64,000 nt of DNA. It comes from Vitrella brassicaformis CCMP3155 (taxonomy: Eukaryota > Protista > Chromerida). The notes beneath the pieces are model-generated. The model had not been told where the DNA came from. It did no database searches and was given only the letters and a program-made list of their open reading frames with translations. The DNA is taken from assembly GCA_001179505.1 (NCBI GenBank), contig CDMY01000542.1, positions 62,001 to 126,000 of the forward strand, written 5' to 3'. Position numbers and translations under genes: made by a program. This document shows, one piece after another, positions 7,557 to 23,434 of this stretch (positions within the stretch are counted from its first letter, which is position 1; the number at the start of each line of letters is the position of its first letter).

Positions 7557-9546
7557 ATGAGGGAGGGCAAGGAAGAGGCCAGCGTCCGCTGCTGTGAGCT
7601 GCAGAAGGCGCTGGATGCCGAGAGGGAGCGGTGCCGCATACTCACCATGACCCTGGTACTTACGTTGGCAAGGGGAGAAGGTCCACCAAGAGTGGGTGGG
7701 CGGAATGGATGGTGTGTTTGCGTGTCCATCAGAGGGAGAAGGAACTGAAGCACATGAACGAGTTCAGCATGCTCACACACCAAAACATGGTCAGTCAGCT
7801 CGCCGACGGCCTGCCCGCCAATCAATCAGTAGACTCATGGCTCTCTGTCTGCTGCAGATCTTCCGCATGAAGCTCAAACTGGCCAACATCAGCGCCTTCG
7901 AGGCCCAGCCAGAAGCCGACACGCACATCTGCCCCCCACACCTCTCAGAGAAGATCCCAGCGGCCCTCAACGCACCTTCAGCACGCACACGCCTCATATC
8001 CATGGCCACTAGCGACACCGACGCTCAAGGAGGAGCGGACACAGACGAGGAGGGCAGCCCCATCCACGCGTGGCTGCGAGAATACGATGAGTGGGACCGG
8101 CGAGGCAAGAGCATGCCTGTGTGGCTGGCCGAGGAGGCCGACAGGGTGTGCTCAGACATGAAGCACTGGGCTGTTGAGTATGTCCTGGGGTGCCTTGATG
8201 GTCAGGGGCCGGGGGTGGCCAGTGAGGTGGGAAGGCAGGGGAAGGAGGCCGGGGATGCTGGAGTCAAGAACGCCGGCAGCAGCAGCAGCGGCAGCTACAG
8301 TGGCAGCAGTGGCAGCAGCAGCAACAGTATACAGGACATCAAAGAGGTCGCAGCCAAGGAAAAGGAACACCGCCTCAGCCAAATCAGGTCCAACAGACAC
8401 GAAGATACGTACACCAACACAGCCTCTGTCGGCAACACGGGTGTATGTGTGTGTTGTTGCAGGCAATTGGATGACACCATCGAGGAGCTCAAGCGCGGCA
8501 AGGACCACCTTTTGCAGCAGCTGCACGTGACCACCGACAGGATCGACAGATCCGCGCCGGCATCCCGCCCGCCCTTCACAAAAAACAGCAAAAACAACGG
8601 CAACAAGCGATCGCACTCACAGACAGATGAGGAGAGAGAAGAAAGCGGCCTAGGCGGATCCACTTCCAAGATCGAGCTCAACGCGACTACGAAGATGCCC
8701 ATGCGGCTGCCGTCCTATGCTGCCCACGACCTCTGCCGCCCGGTGTCTCCGATGATGCGTCCTTACGGCTTGTCGGCTGTGCGCATCCACCCGCCTCCTG
8801 CCGCCGGCCCGGCCAGCCACCGATCTGTCACACCCGCCCCCTCACATCCCTCCATGCATCAGCTCATGATAGGGCACCACCACCACCGCCACCCAACGCC
8901 ACAAATGGGTCTGGGATCGCCGCCCGTCAGCATGCATCACGCCACTCTCAACAAGAGCATCAACAGCATCGCGTGGAACACCGCCGGCAGCAGCAACAGC
9001 GGCAAGGCCCCGCAGCACATGAGCCACAGCATGCAGCTGGGCCCCACGCCGTCGTGCAGCAGGCTGCGGGCCATCAGCCCCACACCAGCACCAGTGCACC
9101 CACCAGCAGGCATCACCAGCCACCCCAACATACTGCTGACCGATTTCTACCCGTGGGTGACGGCGAAACACCCCTTCCCACAGATGGACATGATCCAGCC
9201 GCCATCGCACGAGCCGCAAACACAGCCACAGCCGCCTCCACCCCAGCAGCCGCCTCCTGCTGCTGTTGTCGTCGTTGGTGCTGCTAAGGTGAAGAGGGAG
9301 TCGACTCGGCCGTCGGCGGGCAGCGGGGCGAGCAAGAAGGCTCCAGCGGCCAAGAGGGAGGCGGGGGGGACGGCCCCCTCATCTGTGAACACATCCATCA
9401 AGTCAGGGGGGGCAACACGAGACGAGACACACACAAACGACACGCTGCTGTGGTGCATGTGTGTGTGTGTGTGTGTGTGTAGGTCCAGTAAGATTCGCAT
9501 GGGGACCAAGGCGCAGCTCCAGCGGCCGTGGAAACAGAATTTCTGA
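7557..9546 (+). CDS. Hypothetical protein: N-terminal coiled coil followed by Pro/Ser/His-rich disordered region
   Basis: Long ORF 7696-9546 with coding-like composition, plus short upstream coiled-coil exons (ELQKALDAERERCR; EKELKHMNEF) bounded by GT-AG introns. Start uncertain. Confidence 0.55.
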
Positions 9547-15589: not shown

Positions 15590-17520
15590 ACAACGGGCAT
15601 GTGACGACAAGAGTACGTATTTACCTACCGGGCGCTAAGGGCACGGATCATCCATTGGTCCGTCTATCTGTCTACTCCTCCATCCATCCACCCACGCGTG
15701 TATACATGGGTCCTTTTATACCGATCGCTCGTCTTCTTGCCTATCCGCCTGCCTGTCGGCTGCGTGGATGATATCAGCGCATCACTCTCCTGTGTATATT
15801 TTTTGTCCATGTGCGGGTGGGGCCACGGGCGACGCGGATGGTTGTACAGTCTACCTGTGTGTGGGGGATCGGATGAGTGGGTGGGTGGTGAGGCCACCCA
15901 TATGGATGAATGAATGGATGGATGGATGTGTGCATGATGCATAGGGGAAAGGAAACCTTGCAGTGGGTCAACAAAGGTTTGGAAAAGTGCGGTGGCGACG
16001 TGGGAATGACACGCCGTCATTGTGGATGATGTCCGGACGTCCCTGCCGTGACTCGTGCAGGGAAGGTCGTCCACCAGCCCCTCTGTCGGCTTTGCATTCC
16101 CATTGCCCCACTGCACGAGACGCGTCACATCGATGCATATCGTATCTATGTATCTGTCTTGCGTGTGGGTTGCTGTTGAGTGTGTAGTCGGTGTGCAGTG
16201 AGTGTGCAGCGAGCGTGTAGGACAGGATCGTACACCACACTGCATGGTGTGGATGCTCGTGTGTGCGCGCAGATGAGGACACGCCAGATTTTTCGTGCAT
16301 TATTGCTCTCAACGCAACGAACGAAATGGGCAGCTGCCATCTGTCCATCAATCAATCCAACATAGACATGAACGCGTCACATCACTGCGGCACACAATTT
16401 CTCTCTTCCTTGGTCGCGTGTCGCGTCATCCTCAAGCTGACACACACGCACACACACACACACACGGCACGTGCTGTGTCTCCCTTTCTGGCACTCACGG
16501 AGTGTTGCCGATGTTAAATTGGTGTGCAACAGATGAACGCACGGTATTGCTGCCGTCAGTCAGATGAGAGCCCTTCCTCACGCTGCACTCACTCGGCTGT
16601 GCACTGTGAGCCAGCAGCTTGCCTTCAGGGGAGACATGATACCTGCTTACAGCCTTGCTCCAGCAAGCGTGTCCGGCAGACATATGCCTGTCTCTGCGCT
16701 GCATATTATGTGTACAATTCTAGCTCTCAAGGCAGAGCCACAACATCATCCAGACTCCCAGCACTGTTGCCATCCCGCCCCACCACGAGCCCCTCGCGCA
16801 CATTGCTTTGTTAACACTCGGGTTGGGCTTGGGGCAGGGATGCGCCTGTCAACTGAGTTCCGTTGACGCGTGTGCTGGCTTGATTGGCTTGATTTGTTGC
16901 TGGCCTGTTCGTGTGTGTGGTATGGATTGCTCTCGTCTGCTCTGCCTGGCTGGCTGGCTGGCTGAGTGCGGTTGTAAGACCAGAGCCGTCTGCGAATGAG
17001 GCACATCAAGTGGATGAAAGCGACAGACAGACAGACAGACAGACAGACAGAGACGGAATGGAGACGAGTGGACGTGTCGACCAACGAGCACAGCACTGCA
17101 CTTGTACCACTTCATTTATCAACACGACGGGTTTGTGTGAGTTGTGTCTTCATCTTGAAAGATTCGCACGACCATCCATGCACTGCAAAAATGGTTGAGA
17201 AAATGAGAGCAGGGCAGTGCATACAAGAGGCCGGCAGTCCTGATGCACACCCCATGCCAAAGGCAGAAGGAAAATGAGACATGGAAAGATGGAAAGACAG
17301 AAAAAGAGAAACCCCGAGCGAGCAGTGGGTAAGTCTATGCGCGAGAACGCCTTAAAGCTCTCTCAGTCGCTTAAACCTCTCCGCATCATCCCGATTCCCT
17401 AACATGCACCGCCCCAAATACACCAACTGCAGCAAAGGCATATCAAAGCACATCACCGGCGCCCACACCACATATGTCTGTCTCTTTTGCATATCCATGC
17501 TTCGAGCCTCCATACCGTGG

Positions 17521-20500
17521 CTACAACATCACCCACATGAGTGCCACCACTGCCATCCCGCCCCACCATGACTTGCTCGTATGCTTCGCCGCGTTGGCAG
17601 TAGGCTGCTCGTGAGCTTGGACTGTGATGGTGATCTTGGTCTTCTTGTCGTCCACCCCCTCCAGTATGGCCTTCATAGTGGCATTGCTCTCCCACACCGC
17701 CGGCCCCTCTGTGTCCTTCGTTCCTCTCCCCCTGCCAGGCAGGATGCAGGCATCCGTGTGGCGGACGTAGTTGCCCTGGTGAATCTGGATGTACTCGAAG
17801 CCCTCCACATTGATCAGCTCGATGCGCGGCAACTTTGTTCCATTCTCTCCCCCATCACGCCGCACAAAGCCATCGTAGGTGCCGGTTGGAATCTTCCCCT
17901 TCTTTTGGTCCTCGAGCTCGAGCGTGTGGCCGGAGGCGGTGTTGACGCCCGAGCATTGAAAAGTCCCCATGCGAGCAGAGATGCCGTTGTGCGTTGTGGG
18001 TGATTCATCCCGCGTGACGACACAAGAGAGGGTAGGAAGGCAGCTGCAGGCGACGAACCGGACCTCATATTTAGTGAGGGGCTCCTCTGGGGTGAAATAT
18101 TCCACCTTGTCTCCCACGCGCATCGACAGAGCTATATCACGAATCCCATTGTCCTCGGGAATCTCAGACACGAGTCCCTCCCTTCGCTCTATCATATCTT
18201 CGGCACCTGCAGGTAGCGACGGCGATGAGATGAACCCTGGAGATAGACAAGACAGATACCAACCAACGACACATGGATGGAAGGAGACAGATAGGCTGCA
18301 GTTGCTGATGTCTCTTTCACTCACTCACATTCTTCGAAGGTCACAGTATCAGTGACTTTCGGTGATGGCCCGGGCAACCCCTTTGGCTTCCCACGATCCG
18401 AGTACCATAGGTAGTCCTGCGGCACGATACGATAGCATATGTCACCCTTTTCAGGTACTGTGATAGGAATGCTCTCAGGACAGGGAGTCTGCTCGCCATA
18501 TTGGACTGTGACGGTGATTTTGGTGGTCTTGTCGTCGACCCCTGTCAGTATGGCCTTCATGGTGGCTTCGCTATCCTTCACCATCGGCCCCTCTGTGTCA
18601 TGCATGTCTCTTCGTGTGCCAGGGAGAATGCAGGCATCCGTGTTGCGGACGTAGTTGCCTTTGTGAATCTGGATATTCGTGAAGTTCAGCACATCCACCA
18701 GCTCGATGCGAGGGCCCAGGTTGCTGGATCCCGGATCATGCCTCACATAGCCATCATAAGTGCCGGTTGGAATCTTCCCCTTCTTTTGATCTTCGAGCTC
18801 GAGCGTGTGGCCGGATGCGCTGTTGACGCCCGAGCATTGAAAGGTCCCCATGCGAGCCGTGATGCCGTTGTGCGTTGTGGGTGATGCGTCTCGCGTGATG
18901 ACGCAAGAGAGGGTAGGAAGGCAGCTGCAGTCCACAAACCGCACAACATGACGTGTCCAGTTTAAGCCGGCGTCTTCGTCAGCGATGCACTCCAACATGT
19001 CTCCTACGCGCATCGACAGAAGTCCCTCGCGCATCTCATACGGCCACCCTCTCGTAAAGTCATACATACGCATAACTTCAGAGGTTGGAATTCTGTCTGA
19101 CCCTGAGAAGCCTGGATGCATTTTGCCATCAATCCCTGCAGGTAGACAGAAGAGACAGAAGAGACAGAAGAGACAGAAGAGACATGGACAGAGCAGACAT
19201 GGCATCCAACAATATATGTGACAATGCCTTTCTCTTTACTCACAATGTTCGAATGTCACAGTGTCATTGAGTGCGGGTGTTGGCCCGGGTAGCTTGATTG
19301 CTCCACGGCTAGGATCCCAGTACCATAAGTAGTTCTGCCGGACGACGCGACAACACACATCTTCATACTCCCCGATAAGACATCCAACTTGGACTGTGAT
19401 GGTGATGTTGGTGCTCTCATGTACACCATCTAGTATGGCCTCCATAGCGTCTTCACTGTGGGTCATCATTGGCCCCTCTGTCTCGTCCATTCCTGCCCAC
19501 TCCCCAGGAAGGATGCCACCATTTGTGTCGCGGATGTAGTTGCCTTTGTGAATCTGGATGTGCTCGAAGCCCGGGACATCTCTTAGCTCGATGCGAGGAC
19601 CAAGATTCTTTTTTCCGAGATCACGCCGCACAAAGCCATCGTAAGTGCCGTTAGGAATCTTTCCTTTCTTTTGGTCTTCGAGCTCGAGCGTGTGGCCGGA
19701 GGCGTAGTTGACGCCCGAGCATTGAAAGGTCCCTAAGCGAGAGGTGATGCCGTTGTGCGTTGTCGTGAATGGATCGCGGGTGATGACACAAGAGAGCGGC
19801 CCAGTAGTTTCAATTTTGATGGTGATCTTGGTTGGTGTGATGATAGGGGGGGCCACGCGATGAAAGACAGAGCTGTCGTTGAAATGATTCAGCCGCTCTA
19901 GTATGGCCTTGAGAGCGTCTTCACTCTTGGTCACCATCGGCCCATATTCGTCATTCATTGCTCTTCCCATACCAATGAGAATAATTGAGTGTTGGACGAT
20001 GCTCCCATGGCAAATAGAGATGCGGTCCCTCAGACAGACTTTCCATTGAGCCCACCAGTCGGACTGGCCCGCATGACATCCATCCGCCACCAGATCGATA
20101 CGAGATGTCGGCGCTAAGCCATACCCAAAGTTATCTTCATTCCCAGCGAGCATGCGGAACCCATCATAAATACCGAAAGGTATATGCCCATGAACTCCGG
20201 GAGGTATATACCCGTCTTCGAGCGTGTGGCCGGAAGCGCTGTTGACGCCCGAGCATTGAAATGTTCCCATGCGAGCCGAGATGCCATTGTGCGTCGTCAG
20301 GAATGGGTCGCGGGTGATGACGCAAGAGAGGGAGGTAGGATTGATAGCCACCAATCGATCTTCCCATGGCCCACCGCCGCCATCCCAGACACCCTGAAAA
20401 AACCTCTTGCACTCTTCGAAGTCTCCCACACGCATCGACAGGAACACGTCAATCTCCCCCCCATGATAACGCCAATAATGATATAGGCGACCACCCCACA

Positions 20501-20986
20501 TTGCCACAAAACTTAGGTCCTCAACCTCTGGCCTTTCATCTGGACGCCCTGATGAATGATGGAAGCAAAGGATGAAAGGCCGTTACCGATAGGCTGCTCT
20601 TTTACTTACAGTGTTCAATCGTGACCGTATCGTTGATTTTAGGTGTGGGGCCGTTGCCCCGCCGCACGATGCGACAACACCATACATACTGTCCGATAGG
20701 CTTCAGCTCGTGGTGGGGGTAGAAGCCCTCAGGACAGTGAGTGTTGGACGTCACGTGGGCAGCTGCACCCGCCTCTGATGGACAAAAATGAATAATTGGT
20801 ACAATGTGAGTTGGTTTGCGTGCCTTCGTGTGACGGTGCTGTTGTCGCGCGTCTCATTCAAACCAGCCGTGAGGCGGGGAAAGTGGCCTGCACCTGAAGC
20901 AGTGACATCCACACACACAATGACGGTGTGAGGGCATCGTGCATAGTACCCGTGCACGTCAACACGATGACCACAAGGAATCGCAT
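17521..20986 (-). CDS. Predicted secreted or surface protein, about 1019 aa: signal peptide, 3 degenerate FKBP-like modules, 4 DUF5675-like domains, hydrophobic C-tail
   Basis: Hand-built model with exons 20986-20950, 20893-20864, 20774-20610, 20548-19244, 19135-18329, 18236-17521 (3060 nt, frame-consistent, all GT-AG). Repeated motifs GTFQCSG..GHTLE..IPxGTY..IQIHxGN...TDACILPG and GPxP...DTVTxExW...LSMRVGD. The first two exons are less certain. Confidence 0.75.
17900..20300. repeat. Four diverged tandem copies of the DUF5675-like coding unit
   Basis: TTGACGCCCGAGCATTGAAA begins at 17942, 18823, 19708 and 20242 (spacings 881, 885, 534 bp), each preceded by GAGCGTGTGGCCGGA. Confidence 0.9.
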
Positions 20987-21367
20987 CTTGACCCGCGACG
21001 TCTGAGGGCGATCTTGCAAGCTCTGCCCCCAGATGCCCCCAGCAAGCTGTGTCTCCTCGGTATTGCGTGCGGCAGGGGAAGCTTCCGATCGATGTGCGCA
21101 TGACGGAGGACTGCGCTATGCTCTTGTTTAGGCAGACAATCGCATATGTAAGTAAGTCGGGAGCTGGAGACACATTCAGGCACGCCAGATACTTCGTTGA
21201 TTATTGCCCTTACGATACCAGACATCAATAGCCACGATCCGTCCATCAATCCATCCATCCATCCATGATACGTACCCACATCTAACACGCCACGCCAGTC
21301 ACGCCACACACAAAACGGAGACAGTCAGCAAGCTACATCTCATGGACCGCTCCTCTTTGCAGCTCTA

Positions 21368-23434
21368 CTAGCTTTCCCAGCCCCTTTCCCAGCCTCTCAG
21401 CAGCATCTGCACACTTGTCTTCGCCCAGATTGGCGAAGGCGACTCGAATATGACCAGGCGACCCACACGCCGACCCCGGAATGACCACCACACCATACTC
21501 CCGCACCAGCCACCGAACCACACACTCGTCAGACGCCCATTGGCCACCCTCACCGCCCTCTCCTCCCTCTCCGTCGGTGTCTGTCAGCTGTGACGCCGGT
21601 ATGTGCTGAGGCAGCCTGCAGAAGAAGTATATCGCGCCATCCCCGCCCTTGACGTTGCTCTCTCCTAGGAGGGATGTGAGGGCGGTCTTGACGGCTGCTC
21701 GGTTGCGCCTGACGCTGCCGAGTCGCGTGTCGTCGGCCACCCATGCTGAGCCGGCCTCCAGGCAGCCGAGGGCTACACGTTGGGAGAGGCCCGGCGGGCA
21801 GATGACGAGTGTGTCTTGAACCTGACACAGACAGATGGTTGGTGTGGTGGTGGTGGCTGGTGCGTGTCCGTGTGAGGGGCTGGCGTCTTGCTTGCTGACC
21901 TTGAAGAGGCCGCTCCTGAGGGCTTCGTTGGCCATGGGAAAACAAAGGTACCTGCATACGCACACACACACCACACAGAGATAGAGGGGGGTGAAGCGGG
22001 ATACATACATCAAGAGGGACGCACGCAGGGACATGGACATACACACACAGCTGCCTAGCCTGATCTAGCCGCCTTCAGCACCCTCTCGAGAGCAGCCGTG
22101 CTCTATGCAGCCACTCTGATGCCATCGGCCCCCACCTCTGTTCTGTCAAGGCGGGGATGCCCTCACGACGGACACAATGGAGTGCCCGCCATTCTTTCTC
22201 TCATCACCAGGGGAGCATCAGCACTTCAATCAGATTTATGTGCGCCCCTCCCTCTCTCCCTCTCCCGCCCTCACCCGATGCGCCAGCCCATCATGCCGTA
22301 TGCCTTCGAGAACGAGAAGATATTAACCACGTGATCGCCCTCCACACACATGTGCCGCCTCGAGCCATTATCGCCATCACAGTCACCATCACTGTCGGTC
22401 CACAAGAAGTGCTCGTATGTGTTGTCGACAATGAGCCAGATGCCGCGCTCGCGACACAGAGATGACAGCTCTTCAAGCTCAGCCCTGGTCAACAGAATGC
22501 CTACACACATGGACACACACAGGCACACAGCTTATCTGCAAGGGCGATAAAAAAAGGCGGAGGGGTGTGTACGATTACGTACCTGTCGGGTTGCCAGGAT
22601 TCACGACACTGACCGCACGGACGTTGCTGCTGCTCGACTCAAGCAGACGCCTGAATGAACACAGGACCACCACACCCATGAAATGCATCATCCGTTTCTC
22701 TCTCTCCCTTTCCCACTCTTACCTGAGTGCAGCCATATCGGGCCTCAGCTCATCAGTTGTGTCACACAGGCACGGCACCAGGTTGGTCATCTGACACGCC
22801 ATATAGTGGTTGAAATAGAACGGCCGAAACAGCACGACACCATCACCAGGGTCAAAGAGAGCCAAACACAGATTCACAAAGGCCTGGTTCGCTCCCACAG
22901 TGATGAACACATCGTTATCTGCCGCTGTCAGGCCGTTCTCCCTCGCGATTTTCTCCACCAGCTTTGACCTCAGCTCGGCACTGCCCTCGTCAGGGCCGTA
23001 TCTGTGAACCTCGGACGCGCTCTTGGTGAGCTGGCTGATGGCATTCTCGATGGCTGTTTGTGGCGGTGTCCAATGCACGACTCCCTGGCTGAGAGATAGC
23101 ACATCACGGTCAGCGAACTCCCTCAGCATCTTCTGTATGGCGAATCAATCAAACACAAACGCACAGGAAGACGGAGAGTGTGAGATTGTCCCATCCATGC
23201 ATCTGCTGTGATCTGTGTCTGACCTGCATGTGTACGATGCATGGCGCGTCTGTCAGTGTGATGCGGCGCGAGATGGGAGGAGGCATCCGCAAGGCCGACG
23301 GTCCTTTCAGGAGCACTCCCCAAGATCTCGGGAGCCTCGACGAGATCTCGGGTTTTCGTGATCTTGGGCTTCTCAGCAACCGGCGACAACCGTCCAGGGA
23401 GCCACGGAACCACGGGCTGCGATTTTTTTCGCAT
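21368..23434 (-). CDS. Class I/II PLP aminotransferase, ISS1/VAS1-like, multi-exon
   Basis: SLSQGVVHWTPP, RYGPDEGSAELR, ITVGANQAF, VVNPGNPTG, LIVDNTYEHF, FSFSKAYGMMGWRIG, VIPGSACGSPGHIRVAFAN. Start codon uncertain. Confidence 0.85.

Follow-up and report, generated by a model that had tools for sequence, protein, structure and literature searches.

A single spliced gene on the minus strand at positions 17521-20986 of the window, the 64,000-nucleotide stretch of Vitrella brassicaformis CCMP3155 analysed here (contig CDMY01000542.1, positions 62,001 to 126,000 of the forward strand), encodes a protein in which four copies of the DUF5675 domain are combined with three modules of a predicted FKBP-like fold. 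The best explanation of the whole, to which we assign a probability of roughly 0.55, is that a transferred domain was amplified as an exon unit into an array that would be directed at peptidoglycan at the cell surface. From the N-terminus, the order of parts is putative signal peptide, FKBP-like module, DUF5675, DUF5675, FKBP-like module, DUF5675, FKBP-like module, DUF5675 and hydrophobic tail. An FKBP-like module of ~120 residues precedes DUF5675 copy 1 and is found again between copies 2 and 3 and between copies 3 and 4, while copies 1 and 2 adjoin. Pfam, alignment and hydropathy place these parts in the same order as the original prediction, which was made from the sequence of the window alone. 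We regard this anatomy of the gene as close to certain.

The ~57% G+C composition of the window, together with its microsatellites and intron-rich open reading frame (ORF) fragments, indicates eukaryotic DNA. Five exons on the minus strand (Table 1) join to form one open frame of 1,009 codons, and every intron in this model is bounded by GT..AG and lies in phase 1. The introns within FKBP-like modules 1, 2 and 3 each break a Trp codon (T/GG), directly after DTVTIEH, DTVTFEH and DTVTFEE, respectively. The gene is already public as a single protein of 1,028 amino acids on a 350-kb scaffold (GenBank CEM21648.1, here also P0002; A0A0G4G0P8), which NCBI lists as 'unnamed protein product' and UniRef as 'DUF5675 domain-containing protein'. 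GenBank and UniProt thus already contain the gene model. Mapped on the window, CEM21648.1 consists of the same five exons plus a mini-exon of 59 nucleotides (20893-20835), and its acceptor for exon 2 lies 2 nucleotides further on (20772). This public model has five introns in total, and the frame is open both with and without the mini-exon. The original prediction had joined three apparently separate ORFs and an unlisted exon at 20610-20774 into one gene with five introns, three of them in phase 1 and splitting a Trp codon at the same spot in each spacer. The open frame, the spliced contigs described below and the public protein agree with it on each count, apart from the slightly different acceptor. 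The three 'separate' ORFs result from reading a eukaryotic gene with a bacterial-style ORF finder.

Four public sequencing runs were placed on positions 16800-21600 of the window. Two of these (X1 and X7) consist of transcript contigs, and the other two (X2 and X3) behave as genomic DNA. The joints 18236/18329 and 19135/19244 are present in assembled transcript contigs of both X1 and X7, with a short side of 163 (X1) and 132 (X7) letters at the first and of 51 and 52 letters at the second. The joint 20548/20610 occurs in X7 alone, where its short side is only 23 letters. The transcript contigs of both runs stop at 17097-17099, which gives a 3' untranslated region of ~420 nucleotides. The DNA runs contain no joints and are collinear with the genome, with even depth (~24-26 in X2, ~12-13 in X3) across the gene and its flanks. 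These spliced transcripts and the collinear DNA of even depth exclude contamination and separate genes for exons 2-5.

DUF5675 (PF18925) is found by Pfam in three of the four copies, with 56-64 bits against a gathering threshold of 26.7 bits, and the protein as a whole scores 171 bits; the DUF5675 pattern recognised in the bare sequence is confirmed by these scores. The His/Cys pair is intact in half of the copies (3 and 4) and lost in the other half (1 and 2). Copy 1 lacks both residues and also carries insertions. In an alignment of 58 DUF5675 rows, no row departs from the His, Gly and Asn of the motif IQIHxGN, and the Cys of GCILxG is almost invariant. A search with a profile seeded by a mixed Vitrella and phage alignment identifies 4,053 matching proteins, mostly of ~130 amino acids. 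The Vitrella domain is also matched by PHROG 1501 (E 2e-13), and a translated search of phage genomes returns 43 records, mostly Vibrio phages, at ~40% identity and E ~1e-9. The six Vitrella copies, four here and two in a paralogue described below, share ~35-42% identity with proteins of phages and uncultured prokaryotes. The hypothetical proteins encoded by Vibrio phages 1.187.O, helene 12B3 and K406 (132 amino acids) correspond end to end to the same domain with 36-42% identity, and the motifs TLE, IPxGTY, IQIHxGN and GCILxG are common to the phage, bacterial and Vitrella forms. However, phage and bacterial DUF5675 proteins are intron-free and consist either of the single domain (~130 amino acids) or of a fusion to PG_binding_1, holin or amidase domains, whereas the Vitrella gene is spliced and contains four copies, two of them catalytically decayed, with FKBP-like modules in between. 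The Vitrella copies additionally carry an insert of 8 residues after an FQC motif and a Cys-containing N-terminal extension.

Other searches for relatives of the domain returned little. A word-index protein search with one exon as query gives the paralogue only, and with a single DUF5675 domain as query it gives nothing. Pattern scans retrieve one locus in a Flavobacteriaceae metagenome-assembled genome and one viral contig, and no DUF5675 of the Vitrella type is present in the JGI metagenome contigs scanned in this way. NCBIfam contains no model for DUF5675. The literature found on DUF5675 includes nothing that concerns a eukaryote, and none was found that links Vitrella to such a gene.

The modules set among the DUF5675 copies are a divergent FKBP fold, on which a chain of sequence comparisons and uniform fold matches agree. 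The chain begins with a spacer profile, made from the contiguous copy in the paralogue (public model P0001) and the exon halves in the window, which was scored against 1.84 billion representative proteins; this set is also the scope of the statements on spacer distribution that follow. Only five proteins match at E <= 0.001: the gene itself, the paralogue, a fish uromodulin-like protein (P0003) and two further Vitrella proteins, CEM05778.1 (E 2e-7) and CEM32327.1 (E 3e-5). The fish protein matches over a short Cys-rich stretch and was judged a chance hit. The other two, the nearest relatives of the spacer anywhere and from the same genome, are arrays of FKBP-like repeats that UniRef names peptidylprolyl isomerase. 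CEM32327.1 passes the Pfam model FKBP_C (PF00254, gathering threshold 21.1 bits) at 39 bits, and CEM05778.1 falls just short with 17.7 bits. When the four spacer copies are compared with eight Vitrella FKBP repeats by hhalign, the probability is 97.1% with E 4.8e-11 over 84 columns. The profile of these repeats in turn matches 45 sequences in the PDB, almost all of them FKBPs. The spacer profile alone has one PDB match, a peptidylprolyl isomerase in the right register, at E 0.32.

The predicted structure points the same way. An AlphaFold2 model of residues 735-860 of CEM21648.1, computed from a 12-row alignment, has a predicted local distance difference score (pLDDT) of 74.2 and a predicted template modelling score (pTM) of 0.66. 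Of the 50 best Foldseek matches in the PDB, almost all are FKBPs, with E from 5e-3 and a probability that reaches 1.0. The 30 best matches in the Swiss-Prot part of the AlphaFold database are likewise FKBP-type proteins almost without exception, including FKBP16/17 of the chloroplast lumen. Alignments with VIA-align extend over 90-100 residues. A pass over 48,161 chains that is independent of Foldseek has at its top almost only FKBP-fold proteins (FKBPs, Mip, FkpA, trigger factor, SlyD and GreA C-terminal domains). The predicted model therefore has the fold of FKBP domains such as Legionella Mip, FkpA and FKBP16/17, and the FKBP segments GxxP..xTVxVxY and xxMxVGE align with GPxP..DTVT and LSMRVGD of the spacer. 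The spacer differs from these FKBPs by an N-terminal extension that contains Cys and by an insert in a loop, and it stays below the Pfam model: FKBP_C gives no match to it even at E up to 10, nor any in the whole protein. As read by eye from the alignments, Glu and Ile/Gly occupy the positions of Tyr26 and Trp59 of FKBP12, and there is no FDSS segment. Most residues of the isomerase pocket thus look replaced. Because these positions are not kept, the spacer would be expected to serve a structural role, and it is probably not an isomerase. Of the resemblance to FKBP proposed at the outset, the fold has held, through profile homology and model, but not a match to the FKBP_C model, and the pocket looks degenerate.

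No organism other than Vitrella was found to have the spacer, and pattern scans of the JGI metagenome contigs did not find it either. Its relatives in Vitrella are proteins of 4-6 degenerate FKBP repeats, encoded one per exon, with leaders that resemble secretory or plastid leaders (L008 2001-4252; L009 2001-4913 and 5114-6843, where a third such gene adjoins). At their N-termini, a signal-peptide-like stretch is followed at once by Phe. A signal peptide followed by Phe is the pattern of plastid-targeted proteins in red-lineage algae.

The repeated unit of the DUF5675 gene is the exon between two phase-1 introns, which runs from the second half of one spacer through a DUF5675 domain into the first half of the spacer that follows. 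Between module 3 and the paralogue, the corresponding introns share 77% identity (z 6.5). Within the gene the introns are 54-64% identical to each other with z of 2.5-3.6, values that partly reflect the composition of splice sites and pyrimidine tracts. The identical position and phase of the intron in every spacer, together with this residual similarity, bear out the earlier suggestion that the intron was duplicated along with the module. The Trp residue that it splits is invariant also in the repeats of CEM05778.1 and CEM32327.1. However, those genes encode FKBP-like repeats only, each repeat on its own exon; their introns fall between repeats and never at the Trp codon, and they contain no DUF5675. 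Inheritance of the spacer intron from the FKBP-repeat genes was considered and rejected, as the introns there are located between repeats and apparently in phase 2 (judged by eye). This location indicates that the Trp-codon intron is specific to the DUF5675 gene family.

The search for paralogues that had been proposed yields a gene with two DUF5675 copies on scaffold CDMY01000469 (L001 9158-11238; P0001, 423 amino acids). It has the homologous intron; its first DUF5675 copy has lost His or Cys, and its last copy keeps both. P0001 starts inside a DUF5675 domain, which marks it as an N-terminally truncated model. Upstream of it are the first half of a spacer (9379-9522), the second half with the rest of the first DUF5675 domain from ~9693, and an ORF at 9158 resembling a signal peptide. 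Placement of these 5' exons by eye, without RNA, produced no consistent splice model. A tree was made from the six Vitrella copies and every second of the 120 DUF5675 matches listed, a sample that is biased to Vibrio-phage-like proteins. The six copies form one clade with 100/100 support and a long stem of 1.81 changes per site. Inside this clade, the paralogue's first copy groups with copy 1 and its last copy with copy 3, which indicates that a two-domain gene predates both the gene duplication and the further internal duplications.

A single horizontal origin of the Vitrella DUF5675 domain is likely on the sequence comparisons. Among the 120 matches listed of the 4,053, no eukaryotic source appears and the named ones are all Vibrio phage, the remaining records being ENA, JGI or Logan entries without an organism name; no exhaustive search of eukaryotes was made. 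The gene itself has the marks of a nuclear gene, with spliceosomal introns, spliced transcripts, even DNA depth and eukaryotic neighbours on the 350-kb scaffold.

As to the type of enzyme, a 2026 preprint on phage lysins describes DUF5675 as 'C82-like' (L,D-transpeptidase-like, MEROPS C82) by structure comparison. The same preprint reports the domain as widespread in phages and in >500 bacterial genera, with unknown function. Structure neighbours of the best match in the ESM Atlas include DUF5675 fused to PG_binding_1, holin and Amidase_2. Once DUF5675 itself is set aside, Tlde1_dom, YkuD and YkuD_2 come nearest in language-model features, at a score of 0.8 that can serve only as a lead. The type VI effector Tlde1a is a toxin whose fold is a modified form of the L,D-transpeptidase fold; with its L,D-carboxypeptidase and transpeptidase activity, it both removes and swaps the D-Ala at the end of tetrapeptide stems in peptidoglycan. 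Both the L,D-transpeptidases (YkuD/Ldt, MEROPS C82) and Tlde1a have a His...Cys pair with a G-C-I/V motif, as does DUF5675, but no significant sequence similarity to the Vitrella domain was found. The only local alignment that hhalign makes with the E. coli L,D-transpeptidases consists of 9 columns around the catalytic Cys. The putative kinship of the Vitrella domain to the L,D-transpeptidases rests on the preprint and the motif. The best working model is that DUF5675 would be a Cys/His enzyme, probably a cell-wall peptidase, acting on the stem peptides of peptidoglycan. Weak PDB matches of P0001 to enterotoxin B chains and potassium channels (E 0.06-1.7) were treated as chance.

The two strongest hydropathy peaks of CEM21648.1 are residues 1-15 and 1017-1028, so that the peptide encoded by exon 1 and the C-terminus are its most hydrophobic stretches. 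The protein contains 28 Cys and 11 N-x-S/T sites. By hydropathy, it looks like a typical secretory protein carrying a glycosylphosphatidylinositol (GPI)-type or tail anchor, its N-terminal part being encoded by an exon that is free of RNA cover in the runs examined.

We propose the following course of events. A DUF5675 gene of phage or bacterial origin would have been acquired a single time by the Vitrella lineage, and the transferred domain would have been joined to an FKBP-like module of the host. The unit of second-half FKBP, DUF5675 and first-half FKBP, an exon with phase 1 at both ends and its intron, would then have been duplicated in tandem, and the paralogue with two copies, on a different scaffold, would stem from duplication of the gene. 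Having entered the secretory pathway, the protein would be retained at the cell surface by its hydrophobic C-terminal signal, either GPI-type or tail anchor. There, its two intact DUF5675 domains would cut or remodel the peptide stems of bacterial peptidoglycan, in defence against associated bacteria or in their digestion. The decayed DUF5675 copies and the non-catalytic FKBP-like modules would be spacers or binding parts. The product is most likely a weapon or tool of bacterial type that has been domesticated for use at the cell surface, although action on peptidoglycan there, taken as a claim of its own, has in our estimate a little less than an even chance.

Several observations weigh against this proposal. 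At its 5' end, no RNA covers positions 20664-20985 in the runs examined, which leaves the two 5' introns, together with exon 1 and the mini-exon, as predictions; the RNA junctions expected at all five introns are seen, in transcript contigs, at three of them. The spacer model is not fully independent, because the alignment used for folding held FKBP-like rows, and its fold scores are moderate (template modelling score 0.40-0.45 against the PDB; VIA-align Z 7-8, at most 8.1). With respect to origin, the Vitrella clade branches next to the whole set of sampled prokaryotic and phage rows instead of within it. The claim of a horizontally acquired prokaryotic domain survives as likely, given that the listed named relatives are all phage, and the domain phylogeny confirms that the six copies are monophyletic, but neither extends to a donor. 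For the enzyme, DUF5675 profiles have no match in the PDB by sequence, and hhalign against E. coli LdtA/B/C/E gives a probability of 0.2%, which is not significant. The C82-like fold is taken from the preprint and not from a test here, and no measured activity of any DUF5675 protein was found in the literature.

Among the alternatives, the one that survives best, though we consider it unlikely, is that the intact DUF5675 domains have their substrate in the alga itself and not in bacterial peptidoglycan; they might, for instance, process or cross-link proteins of the thick Vitrella cell or sporangium wall. The Vitrella clade is very divergent, with its stem of 1.81 and the insert after the FQC motif, and the family has expanded within the genome; divergence and expansion would both fit a new role. 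In addition, Pfam finds no peptidoglycan-binding domain in the protein. However, copies 3 and 4 keep the residues that are invariant in the prokaryotic family, and the domain is otherwise known from cell-wall modules of phages and bacteria. We know of no algal substrate with L,D bonds or bonds to D-amino acids.

Less probable again is a protein that is mainly a non-enzymatic binder, in which DUF5675 domains would recognise fragments of bacterial cell wall as part of a surface receptor or adhesin, in the manner of pseudo-enzyme pattern-recognition proteins. Two of the four copies, as well as the first copy of the paralogue, have lost His or Cys and are nevertheless in frame and conserved elsewhere, and the repeated, spaced arrangement resembles that of multivalent binders. 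Against this, copies 3 and 4 and the last copy of the paralogue keep His and Cys in the family motif. Retention of both residues in the last copies indicates selection for catalysis.

That DUF5675 was not transferred into Vitrella at all, being instead an old, vertically inherited eukaryotic or alveolate family or one passed from a eukaryote to phages, is a far weaker proposition. The lack of nesting in any sampled prokaryotic group and the incomplete search of eukaryotes, noted above as difficulties for transfer into Vitrella, speak in its favour. It fits poorly with the absence of a eukaryotic source among the 120 matches listed, where all named ones are Vibrio phage, with the phages and >500 bacterial genera reported in the preprint, with the absence of a Vitrella-type copy from the JGI metagenome contigs, and with the restriction of the spacer and the combined architecture to Vitrella among 1.8 billion representative proteins. 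Finally, an artefact, whether bacterial or phage contamination or three genes wrongly joined, is scarcely credible: nothing in its favour was found beyond a 5' end that RNA does not support, whereas the introns are removed in transcript contigs of two runs, the DNA depth equals that of the flanks, eukaryotic genes neighbour it on the 350-kb scaffold and the paralogue has a homologous intron, and for exons 2 to 5 the evidence from the runs already refutes it.

Table 1. Parts of the DUF5675 gene and associated segments (window positions)
Feature	Position	Strand	Basis or remark
Exon 1: start codon and hydrophobic N-terminus MRFLVVIVLTCT, putative signal peptide	20950..20986	-	In frame, GT donor in phase 1; same in public model
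Mini-exon AGHFPRLTAGLNETRDNST, public model only	20835..20893	-	Mapping of CEM21648.1; not covered by RNA contigs
Exon 2: N-half of FKBP-like module 1, ends in DTVTIEH and the T of the Trp codon	20610..20774	-	Start in public model 20772
Intron, phase 1, within Trp codon, FKBP-like module 1	20549..20609	-	GT..AG; joint in run X7 only
Exon 3: C-half of FKBP-like module 1, DUF5675 copies 1 and 2, N-half of FKBP-like module 2	19244..20548	-	Pfam, alignment, motifs
DUF5675 copy 1	19806..20339	-	Degenerate; recognised solely through alignment to the other copies
DUF5675 copy 2	19392..19805	-	PF18925 64.3 bits; Gly replaces Cys at the catalytic position
Intron, phase 1, within Trp codon, FKBP-like module 2	19136..19243	-	Joint in X1 and X7, not in DNA runs
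Exon 4: C-half of FKBP-like module 2, DUF5675 copy 3, N-half of FKBP-like module 3	18329..19135	-	Pfam PF18925, motif
DUF5675 copy 3	18498..18914	-	PF18925 56.2 bits; His679 and Cys690 (P0002) intact, IQIHKGN...DACILPG
FKBP-like module 3 (P0002 735-857), intron included; modelled copy	18037..18497	-	AlphaFold2, hhalign
Intron, phase 1, within Trp codon, FKBP-like module 3	18237..18328	-	Joint in X1 and X7
Exon 5: C-half of FKBP-like module 3, DUF5675 copy 4, hydrophobic tail, stop codon	17521..18236	-	Pfam, hydropathy
C-half of FKBP-like module 3	18037..18234	-	Part of exon 5
DUF5675 copy 4	17617..18036	-	PF18925 59.9 bits; His943 and Cys954 intact, IQIHQGN...DACILPG
Segment coding for hydrophobic C-terminal tail	17524..17616	-	Hydropathy maximum, residues 1017-1028 of CEM21648.1
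3' untranslated region	17097..17520	-	Ends of transcript contigs
Orphan tail-coding copy, reads ...SWWGGMATVLGVWMMLWLCLES and stop	16737..16790	-	blastn 78% over 55 nucleotides, E 4e-7, against end of exon 5

The orphan copy of the tail-coding segment is located ~740 nucleotides past the stop codon, beyond the observed end of the transcript. It is probably a relic of a duplication, or alternatively an unused alternative last exon. A loose end and an odd joint near 17551-17568 in the DNA runs are attributable to this short repeat at ~16770 and do not represent a rearrangement.

The intron at 19136-19243 contains a CT-rich microsatellite with a 9-nucleotide repeat unit (TCTCTTCTG x4, 19146-19185). 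Logan DNA contigs break at this microsatellite and at 18817-18875, and the DNA word depth is twofold in the bins 18732-18892 and 19054-19214. The doubled depth around 18732-18892 may stem from the 86% DNA identity of DUF5675 copy 3 to the last copy of the paralogue. Upstream, the last exon of the neighbouring gene is at 21333-22046 on the minus strand, in an ORF that we take, by eye, to be aminotransferase-like. The transcript contig of this gene ends at ~21108, only ~120 nucleotides from the start codon of the DUF5675 gene, which indicates that the promoter region of the latter is very short.

A comparable case is Dae2 of ticks, reportedly a domesticated bacterial cell-wall enzyme derived from type VI amidase effectors. 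Like genes of this type, the Vitrella gene places a prokaryotic cell-wall enzyme family in a eukaryotic nuclear genome, with introns and expression, and antibacterial defence is the presumed use of both (for the concept, bioRxiv 10.1101/2020.04.10.036376). However, the Vitrella gene belongs to another, uncharacterised enzyme family, its host is a unicellular alga, and the domain has been multiplied and fused to a fold of the host. DUF5675, the FKBP fold and the eukaryotic domestication of prokaryotic cell-wall enzymes as a phenomenon are already known; new are DUF5675 in a eukaryote, its fusion to a host FKBP-like fold, the amplification of an exon unit and the catalytic decay in copies 1 and 2. 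The original prediction knew of no described protein with this architecture, and among the 1.84 billion proteins it occurs in Vitrella only, though as a gene model that was already public.

Few cases are known to us in which a eukaryote has turned a bacterial or phage cell-wall enzyme into a tool of its own, and those domesticated enzymes that have been studied, such as tick Dae2, are reportedly real immune effectors. The Vitrella gene would add to them a new enzyme family, DUF5675. It would also extend them to a new host group, the coral-associated chromerid algae, which among photosynthetic organisms are the nearest kin of the apicomplexan parasites. It solves no long-standing problem. It is a clean worked example of gene construction, in which a foreign domain would have been combined with a host fold and a symmetric phase-1 exon copied with its intron, and the steps of assembly can still be read because the catalytic residues have decayed in the first two copies. 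It also provides a direct handle for testing the function of DUF5675. More tentatively, and with the odds clearly against it, the protein may be a modular 'lysin' built by Vitrella from a single transferred domain through duplication of a symmetric exon, in which the two intact heads would cut bacterial peptidoglycan at the surface of the alga, the two dead copies would have turned into wall-binding modules and the host-derived, non-catalytic FKBP folds would serve as rigid spacers or as clamps on the substrate peptide. If so, it would represent a eukaryotic reinvention of the endolysin architecture in a free-living relative of apicomplexan parasites.

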